From the NCBI RefSeq assembly GCF_964204645.1, contig NC_134031.1, positions 2,108,001 to 2,172,000 of the forward strand: a DNA stretch of 64,000 nucleotides, written 5' to 3'. Of the stretch, positions 26,939-50,828 are shown piece after piece (position 1 is the first letter of the stretch; each line of letters starts with the position of its first letter). The stretch is from Tubulanus polymorphus. Lineage: Eukaryota; Animalia; Nemertea. The notes under the pieces are model-generated. The model made no database searches. It was not told where the DNA came from and saw only the letters and a list, made by a program, of their open reading frames with translations. Position numbers and translations under genes: made by a program.

Positions 26939-27043
26939 ATGGAGCTAGTAAGGTTTAACGCGATTTCAGTGGTCATACTCGTGTTTGCCTACAGTTACAC
27001 AACTCATGCCGTTCCAGTAGCAGATAAAACTGCCAAAAATCAG
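26939..27043 (+). CDS. Neuropeptide precursor exon 1 (signal peptide)
   Basis: MELVRFNAISVVILVFAYSYTTHA|VPVADKTAKNQ: basic residue, hydrophobic core, T-H-A cleavage motif; start context CAACATGG; consensus donor CAG|GTCAGT at 27043/27044, phase 0, matching the phase-0 acceptor at 48999/49000. Confidence 0.8.
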
Positions 27044-28391
27044 GTCAGTTAACACCAAAAAATGTCGTCGAATGTTTTCTAAATGTTGTGAAAGTTTACC
27101 GTTGTTAATTGTCTTATCGTAATTCTAGCTATTTTGAACGGGAAAAGTTGCCGAACTCGTCCTAATATTATGAACTATTTCGTTTTATTAGGAATCGTAA
27201 GTAGGATATATAGAGAGGTCGTGTTGAATAAACTTTACAGGTTAACGACAGTCATCTTAATCCGAATTTGAAAAGACGGCAAGTTGTGAATTTTAGTGCA
27301 ATTTTAATCATTTATTTTATCTATACTAGCCAAAAACGTTTAACAAAATGATTTTCATTCGTTTTCATTACAAGCGCGGTTTTAGTTTTAGTTCTATGAA
27401 TCGGAATCTTGGGGTTTTAGATTTTCATATTGAAGTATGCGGGCATCCTCAAGCCGGGCATGGCGGTCATCAACTAATTTGCACGATACAAAATCATCGC
27501 CTTCAATATCTCCATCGTTTACTTATAACCTCTTAATCTTCGATTTTCCCTACGATCTAACAATCGTTTGGGCGTTTTCGTTTTTAATCGAATATTTCGC
27601 ATGAAAGAAAAGAAATTATTTGAAAAAAGAAATGATTGTTATCTATACGCGTGATATCTGAAGTGACGCCTACGCGGTTCATTAAGGCGCTCTTTCATCA
27701 ATCATTTAGTGAATTGTTTACATTGAATCGATTCGTACGAAATTATCGTTACGAAAGTATCTACAAACCTAAACTAATCATATCTGAAATTTGATCAGAT
27801 AAGGAAATTACTTCCAGACTCGTGTTACAAACTCGGATGACAGCGCCAGACGTGGTTTTAAGCTAAAATGACTAATTACTCATATATGAATTGATGATAT
27901 TATACTTAAGCCGATACTATGTCGAAAAAAGATGTTTTTCCTTTTAACGACGGTAGCGACTGTTAAAGAATGTTTTGTTTTTTTTTTCTCGAAATGATTG
28001 ACTAGGTTTTTGCTGCACGCGGGCTGTTGAAGAAAGATTATAAAGCTCCTGCAATACGATCTACCCTTTGTTGGCCACAACGTTATTTGAAATCGAATTC
28101 TAATTAAGTAGATAAACAAAATGAATGGAAATCCGCATAATATATAATCTGATTGACGAATTTATCGGTTTTAATTAGTGATTTCTCCCCGAGGAATTGG
28201 GATTTGCATTTTTCGGAAGCGCGTGCGGCCGATCGAAAAGGAGCGTAAATAAAATCTCGATACAAAAATACTATAATTTAGAGTAAATTTATTACGAAAT
28301 CGTCGAAATTCCGAGAAACTTTACGAAAAACATCTAGAATTATTAGAATTATTGTGCGAAGTTTTTTCTTATTCCAACTACGTAGCGATCA

Positions 28392-28495
28392 ATATATATA
28401 TATATATATATATATATATATATATATATATATATATATATATATATATATATATATATATATATATATATATATATATATATATATATATATAT
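28392..28495. repeat. (TA)n microsatellite
   Basis: About 52 TA units. Confidence 0.97.
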
Positions 28496-31400
28496 CGATC
28501 GATTGGGAAATATATGATACTATTTATATGATTATATCAACGTATTCAAAACGAACTGATTAATGGACGTACAAGATCAAAGGTAAAATCGCGCTCTTCG
28601 AATTACGTCTATTAATTGTATTTCATTTCGAATCATCTATACGTGATGAATGAAGTTATTCGCATGGAATTCACTATTACGGTGAGTCTATTATTAACGA
28701 GTGGCGGAGAGAGAGAGTTTGCTGATCGTTTCAAGGACTGGCTCTCGTGACGATTCGTATCATCGTCAAAACCCCTACCGCTCGTCTGATGATCGTCCCG
28801 ACAACAGCTTCTAGGATGATACGTCACGCATGGTTTTCCATTAGCGCAACCAACCAAAGGGTTCGCCTCCCTGCTCCGATAAATAAACCCGCTCAACACA
28901 AGCTACCAGTTCACAGCGGACTTGGCTCGGTATTTTTGGTCGGTTTAAACTGGTCCGTTTTGTAATGGAATTGGCTAGTTGAGTTTAGCGCGGCGATTTT
29001 TCGCTAGCGTGGAGGCTTGGTCCGTTCTAAATTTGAATGGACTAAATTTAGAAAGCCCTTGATAACGTAGTTTGAACGCGGCGTGGTTCAAATTTGACAC
29101 TATGAAAAACAACAAATCAAAAGAAAAGACTTTTAAAAAGTTCAACCTTACTTGAACCGGTATTTCAAAATCGGCCGCTAAAAGGCATTTAGATTTAAAA
29201 CATCGTGGTTAAACTTCTAAACGTGAACCTGAGACCAATCTCAAAATTTAAGACCTATTTGAAATAAAGTCACGATTTGAAAAAACTTAACAATTACTTC
29301 CTAGATCTCAAGTAAATTACGGGAATAATGTTTATAAACCGCCTTTTTGAAGCGCGCTTCGCTTTTTCCGATCTTTCTGAGGTTATCCCGATGACGCCCG
29401 TTCGAACACGACTTCGCCCTCGAGAACAAAGCCAAGCTCGTGTAATTCAATCTGCATACGTGTGTCTTTTTGAACGCTTTAAAGTATATCTCAGAGAATG
29501 GAAGGAGAGAACGGAGAGAGAGAGAGAGGACGTACACACCCAGTTCACGTTTGCGCATTTTCTAAAAAAAGCTATCGATACATCTAAAACAGTCTCTTCC
29601 GTCGACGTTAAACAAACGCGACGTCTGACTTTTGAGTAATGCTTGAATATGAAATGTTAAATTGAATTTCTCTACGAAAAAAATCGATGCATTTTTCCAT
29701 AATTATAGATAGGCTGCCAGACATAGTGGGATGTATTTTTAAAAAAATATAACCTATGCTTAAAGCAATTCTTTTCCGTATCTGAAACGTTATTCTAAAT
29801 TTTTTTTTTCATTCATATGATATTGATATCGATATTCTAATTAATGAAGGCTTATAGAAAATTCTAATTGTAATTGTTATTTCAAACCACCAATATCGAT
29901 GACGTAGTGCACATCGACTAACACAGAACCACTTAAATAATGCATAGTAGTTATCAACACACTATTGTAACGGTTTTTATGGCGTCAAAAATATAGATTT
30001 AGAATATCATTAATATCGGTATCGTTCGTTGTTTTCTGGTAAACTGAAAATGGATCAGATTATGCGTCATAATGAAAGGTGTTGAAAATAAGTACAGTGA
30101 AGTCGATCGTGTGTACCGTAAGATTCCGGCGCCTTATCGAGACGCAATAATCTATCGCTAATAACACGATAGAATATTTGCACCGTCCGTCGCCCGGTGT
30201 GTAACGATCGTCTAATTCAATTTGTCGAGGATTATCTCATTCGCCGATAAGTCGTGTTAATGCACGGATCAATGACGTAGGTAATGGAGTACAACTAAAC
30301 CCGTCACGATCGGCTGCACGCGGGCGAGGCGGCTCGATTTCCCTGTCGAAAACCTGCCACGCTTCACCACCTGAAACGACGTGCCTGAATACCCTATCCT
30401 AATAACGGGCGATTTTTAAAGTTTCAAGTTTCAGAGTTTTGCTCCAAAAAGAAAAAAAATTGAGCGCAGCTAATTTGTTTTACAATACATTTTACCAGAT
30501 GGCCACAAAGATTGCCTAAGCCCATTGATATTGGTTCGTACCTTGATATACCAGTGTTTAAAGAAATACGTGATCATCAGGATAACAAAAGGGAATATGT
30601 TGCAATATGGGTCTATTTCAGTGGGAGTGGTGTTTAGCATATCTATTTCAAAATGAACTGAATCGACAATTTCAAGACTTCTACTTTTGCGCTCATCAAC
30701 CATATCAAAAAAATTTCGAAAATGATTACGTGAACCATCCTTTCTGAGAAAGTCTTTCTCGGTTGTCATACTTATCTATCATCAAAACGGAAATTGAACT
30801 GTCAAAAGTTTGACAACGATTTCACTGAATGAGTGTTAACGAGTTATTTCATCCAATTATCGAAGAACATTCGACGAATCGTTTAAAAAAACGTATTTTC
30901 CGTGGGATTATATTTGGGATTATATATTTCGCGTCTGATATTGTCGCCGTAAGTTTTTTTAAATGAGCTAGTTTGATTTGAGGTTGGCTGGGTCTTTCAA
31001 ACGTGTGATTGAATGGCTTAAACGCGTTTCAATGAGGTTAAGAATATGAAACATTATTCGCCCTCCATTAATACCGCGTGAAATTCGAACGCGAAGGGCC
31101 ACGTTCTATAGCATAACATTTCAGACAGAAATTGATCTCCAACCTAAGAGGGTACGAATAATACCAAAAAAAATAATTCACAGATTGATTGATGCCCTGA
31201 AAAAGTCGGCGTTTAAAGTAGAAATCGCGTTGTTAATACGTTAACGAAGCTAATCAGGACCGCGTGAAATCATGCTCCAATTACCTAGCGCACTCATTTG
31301 CACGGTAACTGTTTACTAAAGTGCGCTCTGTCAGCACTGTTCTCCTCCGCTGAGCCCCGCAGCTAGAGATTTTTCCGTCAGTAAAAATGCGGCACTTTGC

Positions 31401-49800: not shown

Positions 49801-49970
49801 TGAGAAAAGTTTGTAGAGAGGCCGCGTGTAAAACGTAGAGACAGATAGTATACTTAAAGGTTAACTAAGTTTTTTTTATTTAAGATGCCGTAGTTTAGTA
49901 GTTTTGTCAAGAAATACTCTCGTCATATACCCGTGCTCTCCGTCTTTACGTTTTACTAGTAAGTTTCCAG

Positions 49971-50078
49971 GGTCCGGTTCCACAGTTCCGAGTTAAGATT
50001 TGACTCTGAGTTAACTCATTGAAAATGAACTAACTTTAACTCAGAGTTAACTCTAACTCACAACTGTGGAACTGGGCC
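49971..50078. mobile_element. 108-bp Harbinger-like MITE, family H1
   Basis: TIRs GGTCCGGTTCCACAGTT / AACTGTGGAACTGGGCC; CAG TSD at 49968-49970 and 50079-50081. Confidence 0.9.
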
Positions 50079-50799
50079 CAGGAGTGTCTTCCAATTCTAT
50101 GCAACCCGGGGTTTTCGGTTAGCTGTCGGAAAGTTCCGAGTCGAAATTAGCAGCAAGTGAATTCCGACCAAGATAAAATGCATGGTATTTCAGACTCTAT
50201 AAAGACTGGAATGCTAAAAAAAACATTTTAAGAAAATTTAGTACCTATTTCCTTTAGAGAATAAGACTCCCTGGTTTTAGATTCGCGGTTATCACGACGT
50301 TTAAAGACGCCCGCATTCTCTATCTGTCTCTCTGTCTCTCCACACTTGATTTATTCATCGACGGCGCCCATTTACCGATTTCCTGTTTGATATGTAAACA
50401 ACATGCGCCCGAATTGACAAAAAATTACGTCATTGCAGAAGCAGGTTTTACTACTGCGCTAATGGATTGTTAATGAATCGTCATCAAAAAAATTGTCTGA
50501 CCATTCCCCACCGACTCGCTCGCGAGATCCTTAAAAATCAATGGAATCAAGATTCTTCCAGAAGCTCCCAAGAAGATTTACGTCACTAATTTTAATAATT
50601 AATTACCCATCAATATTTGCTTTAGTTGATTGATTTAAGTGACAGGTGATTTTATGATTATTCAAGATGGCGGCATTCGCCCGGTAGAACGAGGCTTATA
50701 CCGCCCCACGACATCGTCGTTCCAGACAGTTATTTAGGAAGACGACTTCGAGGAAGATTTCAAACGAATATTTTAAACGTTTTTCTTTCCGTATTTCAG

Positions 50800-50828
50800 A
50801 AAAAGCTGACAAGAAATCGACTCAGTAA
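50800..50828 (+). CDS. Probable terminal coding exon of the neuropeptide precursor (KKADKKSTQ*)
   Basis: Strong acceptor TTTTTCTTTCCGTATTTCAG at 50799; the phase-1 join to the donor at 49786 gives ...SAAD-KKADKKSTQ-stop (306-aa precursor); AATAAA candidates at 50844, 52460 and 52588. Confidence 0.55.

Follow-up and report, generated by a model that had tools for sequence, protein, structure and literature searches.

Described precursors with two blocks of peptides

In PedalPep1 of Tubulanus polymorphus (Thiel et al. 2021, PMC8557429, Supplementary Material 01), a signal peptide and an acidic spacer are followed by a block of xLDxLGGxxIHGG peptides at RR sites, then by an FDSIGHG block and a short tail. 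Pedal-peptide-1 of Platynereis dumerilii (AEE25644; PMC3890597) shows the same order, viz. a QLDSLGG-type block (block 1) and then many FDSIGH peptides (block 2), with KR/KK sites; however, its block 1 peptides have IPLY-amide ends, lie at single-R sites and lack His, and its block 2 copies are more numerous than in the gene described here. The two-block layout, which besides Platynereis is also present in 9 nemerteans, 3 brachiopods and Phoronis psammophila, has been public since at least the Platynereis 'LYamide/FDSIG' record (AEE25644) and the surveys of 2013 (PMC3890597) and 2021 (PMC8557429). In arthropod orcokinin A/B precursors (viz. Tigriopus XP_059084447, Halyomorpha XP_066903575 and Carausius UES72888), LDxLGGG-type peptides are likewise followed by a KR-cut xFDxIxxxxFxxF block, but in this case the block 1 peptides have (H/N)LL-R ends without the later His and block 2 is of the NFDEIDR type. 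A preliminary description of the present locus had contrasted it with insects, where OK-A and OK-B peptides come from alternative exons. This contrast was overstated, as LDxLGGG-type peptides lie ahead of NFDEIDR within orcokinin-A precursors (Veenstra 2014, PMC4237046); insects do have an additional B transcript produced by alternative splicing, whereas no extra exon was found at this locus in the window (i.e. the whole stretch of 64,000 nucleotides that was analysed). The FCAP precursors of molluscs (Aplysia NP_001191518; Plakobranchus GFO16170; Sinanodonta KAL3861296) share with the locus the 13-mer motif xLDxLGGxx(V/I)HGx, but they contain that class alone, in more copies (6-28) and with mostly KR sites. 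In Sinanodonta FCAP a phase-0 intron follows the signal peptide, as it does here, which is a weak character.

Structure of the gene and its products

The gene consists of a signal-peptide exon, a peptide exon and two further spliced exons (Table 1). The preliminary description had placed a composite precursor at 26939-50828, and upon re-checking all of its coordinates proved correct; however, the gene itself continues beyond 50828 into a non-coding exon.

Table 1. Coordinates of the gene and of the peptides that it encodes.
Feature	Position	Strand	Remarks
First coding exon	26939..27043	+	35 codons, phase-0 donor CAG/GT; signal peptide and start of pro-region
Intron 1	27044..48999	+	21,956 nt, GT..AG; joint predicted; contig 17 of run X3 supports the use of the acceptor
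Main coding exon	49000..49786	+	IKR site, acidic spacer, block 1, block 2, start of tail
Acidic spacer peptide	49009..49077	+	23 aa, KR to RR
Block 1, three 13-mers	49084..49212	+	xLD(S/T)LGxxxIHxx, FCAP/LYamide-like
Block 2, eleven 14-mers	49231..49767	+	(P/G)FDSIGHGxFSxFx, pedal peptide 1/orcokinin-A type
Intron 2	49787..50799	+	1,013 nt, GT..AG; spliced contig of run X3
Third coding exon	50800..50837	+	End of tail, stop codon 50826-50828; joint 49786->50800 in run X3
Non-coding exon (3' UTR)	50992..51355	+	Reaches at least 51355; joint 50837->50992, GT..AG, contig 17 of run X3

Exon 1 is the sole Met-started, hydrophobic, CAG/GT-ending candidate upstream of exon 2 within the window. Its hydrophobic core, in which the Kyte-Doolittle mean over 9 residues reaches 3.2, and its match to Tubulanus PedalPep1 indicate a signal peptide and pro-region, as in pedal peptide 1, and the signal peptide would probably be cut after ...THA, at residue 24. 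Exon 2 begins after an AG, at 49000, in phase 0. The spliced contig of run X3 starts 9 letters before 48997 and leaves the genome at this acceptor through CAG, the letters with which exon 1 ends. The same contig shows both downstream joints. Run X3 has no record as RNA and is judged to be RNA by its GT..AG joints; exons 2-4 are expressed as a spliced transcript. Of the two product lengths proposed earlier, the 306-aa form agrees with the spliced contig, whereas the 301-aa form is rejected, since its end falls in a spliced-out, polymorphic intron. The joined model was translated for its length alone, and the database searches used single exons as queries; a Pfam scan of exon 2 gave no significant match.

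The single reading frame of exon 2 bears out the earlier claim that one precursor carries both peptide classes on one exon. It was also rightly remarked that the open reading frame track misses the signal peptide and the first two FCAP-like peptides, the first in-frame start codon being a TTG at 49177. Insect orcokinin B is recognized by an alternative exon, separate from that of orcokinin A; in the present case both blocks are on one exon and the window is without an alternative peptide exon. An orcokinin-B-like exon in the 22-kb intron was considered and rejected, as a motif scan of this intron in all frames found no further pedal/FCAP-type exon.

The block 1 peptides start at 49084, 49129 and 49174. 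Their cleavage at RR sites, as first described, holds for the three RR sites, but the third 13-mer ends at a single R (G-R-SLD-KR). Peptides 2 and 3 have a C-terminal Gly and are therefore predicted to be, probably, amidated 12-mers, and the N-terminal Gln of peptide 2 could possibly form pyroglutamate. In block 2, eleven tandem non-amidated xFDxI...F..F peptides lie between basic sites, as is characteristic of pedal peptide 1; these sites are KR and KKR, as had been stated, except for one that is KKKR. The count of eleven 14-mers with 9 distinct sequences was confirmed, and all 11 DNA copies are distinct.

Identity as pedal peptide 1

There is very little doubt that a palaeonemertean ribbon worm has at this locus its single gene for pedal peptide 1 (PP1), a member of the pedal peptide/orcokinin family, and that the product is orthologous to T. 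polymorphus PedalPep1. In a comparison made by eye with PedalPep1, as given in the supplement of Thiel 2021, 12 of 16 residues are identical across the exon joint, and the linker between blocks 1 and 2 and three of the 14-mers are also identical. PedalPep1 differs in having two full block 1 peptides and one short one, versus three at the locus, and in its copy order and spacer. The top database matches of the peptide exon are molluscan pedal peptide precursors. The genome contains only one such PP1 locus and a separate PP2 gene, on contig 9, which closely matches Tubulanus PP2. Other genome matches to the exon 2, FCAP and pedal peptide queries are tandem DNA repeats, out of frame; the exceptions are the PP2 gene and, on contig 5, a decayed copy of 78 nt.

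The novelty that had been attached to the composite layout does not hold, because the same layout is already public for several phyla, and it is the standard PP1 structure in nemerteans, brachiopods, phoronids and Platynereis; the preliminary description had itself named such a finding as one that would remove the novelty. What the gene contributes is one more species in a family that has already been sampled well. The further suggestion that the layout is ancestral is probably correct.

Proposed processing and role of the peptides

Prohormones are cut at basic sites by convertases and trimmed by carboxypeptidase, and a C-terminal Gly leads to amidation. By analogy, the precursor of 306 aa would be directed by its signal peptide to the secretory pathway, where cleavage at its basic sites, carboxypeptidase trimming and amidation of the Gly-ended peptides would follow; therefore one cell would make 3 block 1 and 11 block 2 peptides per precursor. 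In Lineus longissimus, mass spectrometry has found ALLDSLGGGAIHPS and ELDTLGGGSIHPETE plus FDQIGHGGFSAFN, all from precursor c46699, and in this relative both peptide classes are shown to be made from one precursor, an orthologue of the locus. Peptides of the PP1 orthologues of both Lineus and Platynereis have been found by mass spectrometry. No LDSLG/LDTLG peptide is listed in the Platynereis mass-spectrometry table (PMC3890597), and among the mass-spectrometry data compared the release of block 1 is shown for Lineus only. Judging from pedal peptide physiology in Aplysia, Tritonia and starfish (PMC5656890), the peptides may be released together and modulate the body-wall muscle and gliding by cilia, and block 1 might perhaps have an effect on feeding circuits like that of FCAP in Aplysia.

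A single signalling system, as had been suggested earlier, would imply a shared receptor. It is rather unlikely that block 1 is processed without a separate signalling role, all of the peptides being variants of one ligand acting on one receptor. Both classes begin with an xDx(L/I)G core, and the literature offers a receptor for neither of them: the family was without an identified receptor in 2017 (PMC5656890), and a search of the literature after 2017 found none for the pedal peptide/orcokinin family. However, the two blocks keep distinct C-terminal halves and cut sites (R/RR versus KR) across phyla, and in molluscs the two classes come from separate genes with different reported actions.

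Relationship of block 1 to molluscan FCAP

The resemblance of the first peptide class to FCAP and orcokinin B, which had been pointed out earlier, is upheld for FCAP, the class against which block 1 scores best, and with orcokinin B it is seen in the xDxLG core. Block 1 matches the FCAP 13-mer motif with its His in register, and its full scores are 27-30 against FCAP peptides and 10-13 against pedal peptides, the comparison sets for this scoring having been collected with the locus protein as query. Beyond the core, the three block 1 tails score +8.1 to +10.8 against FCAP (p 0.011-0.022 each, from shuffled tails), whereas none of the other classes gives them more than +2.7; with orcokinin B only the core is common and the tails differ (-2.5 to +1.6). 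The frequency of a His eight places after the Asp is 77% among FCAP peptides, 1% among pedal peptides, and 0% in the LYamide-like and arthropod block 1 sets. The gene is nevertheless not filed as FCAP, because three copies precede eleven pedal peptides and the precursor does not consist of FCAP copies only.

From the sequences compared, the two-block layout appears to be the normal state outside molluscs, and the FCAP-only and pedal-only precursors of molluscs are quite likely derived halves that arose after duplication. A fairly likely reading, which draws mainly on published sequences and for which the locus provides one clear example, is that an ancestral pedal peptide/orcokinin gene had two blocks and that the first of these was split off as the FCAP of molluscs. 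In nemerteans, brachiopods, phoronids and annelids FCAP would then lie hidden within pedal peptide 1, and it would be equivalent to the arthropod LDxLGGG block. In the freely readable literature searched, no link from FCAP to pedal peptide 1 is stated, and FCAP is treated as a family of its own. It is listed by De Oliveira 2019 for molluscs and rotifers alone, and Thiel 2021 (PMC8557429) makes no mention of it. The family names are loose, because PP2-like peptides of a scallop have been filed as 'FCAP2' (PMC5996578) and cephalopod FCAP-like precursors were refiled as orcokinin B in work on cuttlefish (PMC9410093).

Such loose naming also lends something to the improbable reading that block 1 is a divergent repeat within the pedal peptide/orcokinin family and not an FCAP orthologue, with FCAP having arisen separately in molluscs from another paralogue and the His convergent or old. 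The peptides have only 12-13 residues, PP1, PP2, FCAP and orcokinin B all have the xDx(L/I)G core, the block 1 peptides of Platynereis and arthropods lack the His, and the query used in gathering the comparison sets favours the same doubt. However, the tail scores and the distribution of the His described above speak against this reading. Further, no separate FCAP has been reported from phyla having block 1, a search across the present genome found no separate FCAP gene, and the molluscan PP1 precursors compared are without block 1. That a new composite prohormone arose in the lineage of this ribbon worm alone, by fusion of a gene for FCAP with one for pedal peptides, is hardly credible and is rejected on the distribution of the layout, for although molluscs have FCAP-only and pedal-only precursors, unlinked within 10 kb at four loci (two FCAP genes without a nearby pedal peptide exon and two pedal genes without an FCAP exon), and FCAP is the best-scoring class for block 1, four spiralian phyla have the same block order, as do the orcokinin precursors of copepods and insects, and both blocks share one exon without trace of a join.

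If FCAP is indeed the first block of PP1, then one 'mollusc and rotifer' family vanishes as an innovation, Platynereis and insects have counterparts to the feeding peptide of Aplysia, and the hunt for pedal peptide/orcokinin receptors should expect two ligand classes. This point is of modest importance and is mainly for neuropeptide specialists.

Sequence variation within the gene

In the alignment of block 2, all 11 copies agree at 9 of the 14 columns although their codons vary, and hence the array is not due to chance. Pairwise differences among the copies number 151, 167 and 364 at codon positions 1, 2 and 3, respectively, and this codon pattern is that of purifying selection. In public runs, exon 2 has two variants, both of them synonymous, versus 11-12 in less than 200 bp of flanking intron. 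At 49966-50083, intron 2 carries an inverted-repeat element of 118 nt and high copy number.

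Structure and identity of the gene

Re-reading of the sequence bears out the preliminary description of the exons, the acidic spacer, the three 13-mers (block 1) and the eleven 14-mers (block 2), of which nine are distinct, apart from small corrections. The cutting of the 13-mers at RR does not apply to the third, which is followed by a single Arg, and one of the sites given as KR/KKR for the 14-mers is instead KKKR. Peptides 2 and 3 of block 1 have a C-terminal Gly and are probably amidated. When the 14-mer repeats are compared with each other, 9 of 14 columns are invariant while the codons vary, and the pairwise differences lie mostly at third positions (151, 167 and 364 at codon positions 1, 2 and 3, respectively), which indicates that it is the protein sequence of these repeats that is conserved.

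A Tubulanus polymorphus PedalPep1 is given in the supplement to Thiel et al. 2021 (PMC8557429). In a by-eye comparison 12 of 16 residues are the same across the exon 1/2 joint; the linker that joins the blocks is also shared, as are three complete 14-mers. A second gene, on contig 9 of the same genome, matches Tubulanus PedalPep2 equally well. From these matches the genome is probably that of a palaeonemertean near Tubulanus, and the gene studied here is its pedal peptide 1 (PP1); it is a real, expressed and ordinary gene of a known kind. The pedal peptide 2 gene also has two blocks (viz. xLDxxGSSLL peptides cut at KR, followed by xLDExxDxLL peptides cut at R), a layout also seen in other nemerteans, brachiopods and phoronids. 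A 78-nt copy on contig 5, spanning one FDSIG peptide and its flanks and isolated between stop codons, is a piece of the pedal peptide exon that was dispersed and has decayed.

Features of the window and related loci in the same genome
Feature	Location	Strand	Description
Exon 1	26939-27043	+	35 codons, signal-peptide-like stretch, ends CAG|GT
Exon 2 start	49000	+	preceded by AG, phase matching exon 1
Block 1	49084-49212	+	three 13-mers, on exon 2 after acidic spacer
Block 2	49231-49767	+	eleven 14-mers, nine distinct, on exon 2
Repeat element	49966-50083		118 nt, 30-nt inverted ends, inner inverted repeats
3' UTR intron	50838-50991		
Open frame	54529-55554	-	342 codons, no Pfam match
Membrane frame, second copy	58636-59349	-	multi-pass, split over two frames
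Membrane frame	62259-62876	-	multi-pass
Pedal peptide 2 gene	G000:C9:225666-226016 (L040)	-	two-block
Contig 5 copy	G000:C5:14756134-14756265 (L013:1530-1607)	-	90% identical to window 49661-49738

Transcript evidence

The window stretch is present in four public runs, none recorded as RNA; one of these, X3, behaves as RNA and was taken as such on this account. An X3 contig of 1,201 letters covers 48997-49786, continues at 50800 across GT..AG, and then passes from 50837 to 50992, where a fourth, non-coding exon begins. Of the 301- and 306-aa products proposed earlier, it is the 306-aa form that this spliced contig (49786 to 50800) supports. The last splice joint lies 9 nt past the stop codon, too near for nonsense-mediated decay under the usual 50-nt rule. 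The contig starts nine letters ahead of 48997 and, read back through CAG, leaves the genomic sequence at the acceptor; since exon 1 also ends in CAG, the exon 1/2 joint (27043/49000) is supported indirectly, in addition to the orthology with Tubulanus PedalPep1. In the public runs exon 2 shows two variants, both synonymous, and the adjoining intron 11-12 in <200 bp.

Distribution of the two-block layout

Block 1 followed by block 2 is seen in PedalPep1 of nine nemerteans (viz. Tubulanus, Cephalothrix, Baseodiscus, Notospermus, three Lineus and two Cerebratulus), three brachiopods (Lingula, Novocrania and Hemithiris) and Phoronis psammophila, and mass spectrometry of Lineus longissimus has recovered both peptide classes from the single precursor c46699. 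In Platynereis pedal-peptide-1, five QLD(S/T)LGG peptides are followed by FDSIGH peptides, and the record name, 'LYamide/FDSIG neuropeptide precursor' (AEE25644), already states both classes. Database searches were run with each exon as its own query, and in the arthropod matches Tigriopus, Halyomorpha, Clunio and Carausius, LDxLGGG peptides precede NFDEIDR peptides in the precursor; the resemblance of orcokinin-A transcript peptides to orcokinin B was described by Veenstra 2014 (PMC4237046). The two-block layout is the norm for pedal peptide 1 in nemerteans, brachiopods, Phoronis and Platynereis and was already known, an outcome that the preliminary description itself gave as taking away its novelty. 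In two metagenome-derived, unnamed precursors (P0056 and P0071), the part seen holds only LYamide-like xDSLGGxE(I/L)PL peptides; these may represent annelid genes with block 1 alone, or else splice forms or fragments.

Relationship to FCAP

The window peptides were scored against peptide classes drawn from database matches, and with class sets that are biased towards this protein, having been collected with it as the query, the score of block 1 was 27-30 for FCAP-only precursors, as compared with 18-21 for the LDxLGGG class of arthropods and 10-13 for pedal peptides. Outside the shared core, block 1 gains +8 to +11 with FCAP and no more than +2.7 with any other class (shuffled-tail p of 0.011-0.022 per peptide), and 77% of FCAP peptides, as compared with 1% of pedal peptides, carry a His eight residues after the Asp. 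When the genome was searched with FCAP or with block 1, the PP1 locus was the only match and no separate FCAP gene was found, the counts from searches of this type being lower bounds. The molluscan pedal peptide 1 precursors seen are without block 1 and the FCAP precursors are without block 2, and this complementary pattern suggests that an ancestral two-block gene was split in molluscs. PP1, Sinanodonta FCAP and the Biomphalaria and Dreissena pedal genes all have a phase-0 intron behind the signal peptide, which is a weak character; no linkage of FCAP and pedal genes was found within 10 kb at four molluscan loci. We consider it fairly probable that FCAP would be the split-off half of a PP1-type gene.

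De Oliveira et al. 2019 (PMC6425005) reported FCAP in molluscs and rotifers only, and the term is absent from Thiel et al. 2021 (PMC8557429). For cephalopods, Endress et al. 2022 (PMC9410093) make the case that the precursors carrying an FCAP annotation are orcokinin B, so the likeness of these two has already been noticed. No paper equating FCAP with block 1 of pedal peptide 1 was found in a search extending to literature outside subscription; the idea of FCAP as a split half looks unpublished, but it is easily derived.

Proposed working of the precursor

PP1 carries both blocks and basic cut sites in a single frame, its transcript is spliced, and both classes are produced in a relative (Lineus longissimus). 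The established processing of prohormones runs through loss of the signal peptide, cleavage by convertases and trimming, and peptides with a terminal Gly become amidated. PP1 works like a combined FCAP and pedal peptide precursor; filing the gene as FCAP was rejected, as it does not show the feature of an FCAP-only precursor. Both peptide classes would be co-released from neurons, and they may modulate muscle and cilia, because pedal peptides change how the foot muscle contracts in Aplysia, how cilia beat in Tritonia and the tone of starfish muscle (PMC5656890). No receptor of the pedal peptide/orcokinin family was known in 2017 (PMC5656890), and our literature search found no later receptor paper for this family.

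Other features of the window

The 118-nt element in the second intron, which has very high depth in all runs, is a high-copy MITE-like repeat. The 342-codon frame probably forms the final exon of a gene that converges on PP1, and the transcript contigs lying at 51364-53000 and further along could come from the 3' UTR of PP1 or of the converging gene. The two membrane reading frames are related and resemble myelin proteolipid protein/M6, with an Atlas score of 0.92 and a match to Pfam PF01275 (E 1.4e-4) that falls below the cut-off of the family; the second copy may be broken.
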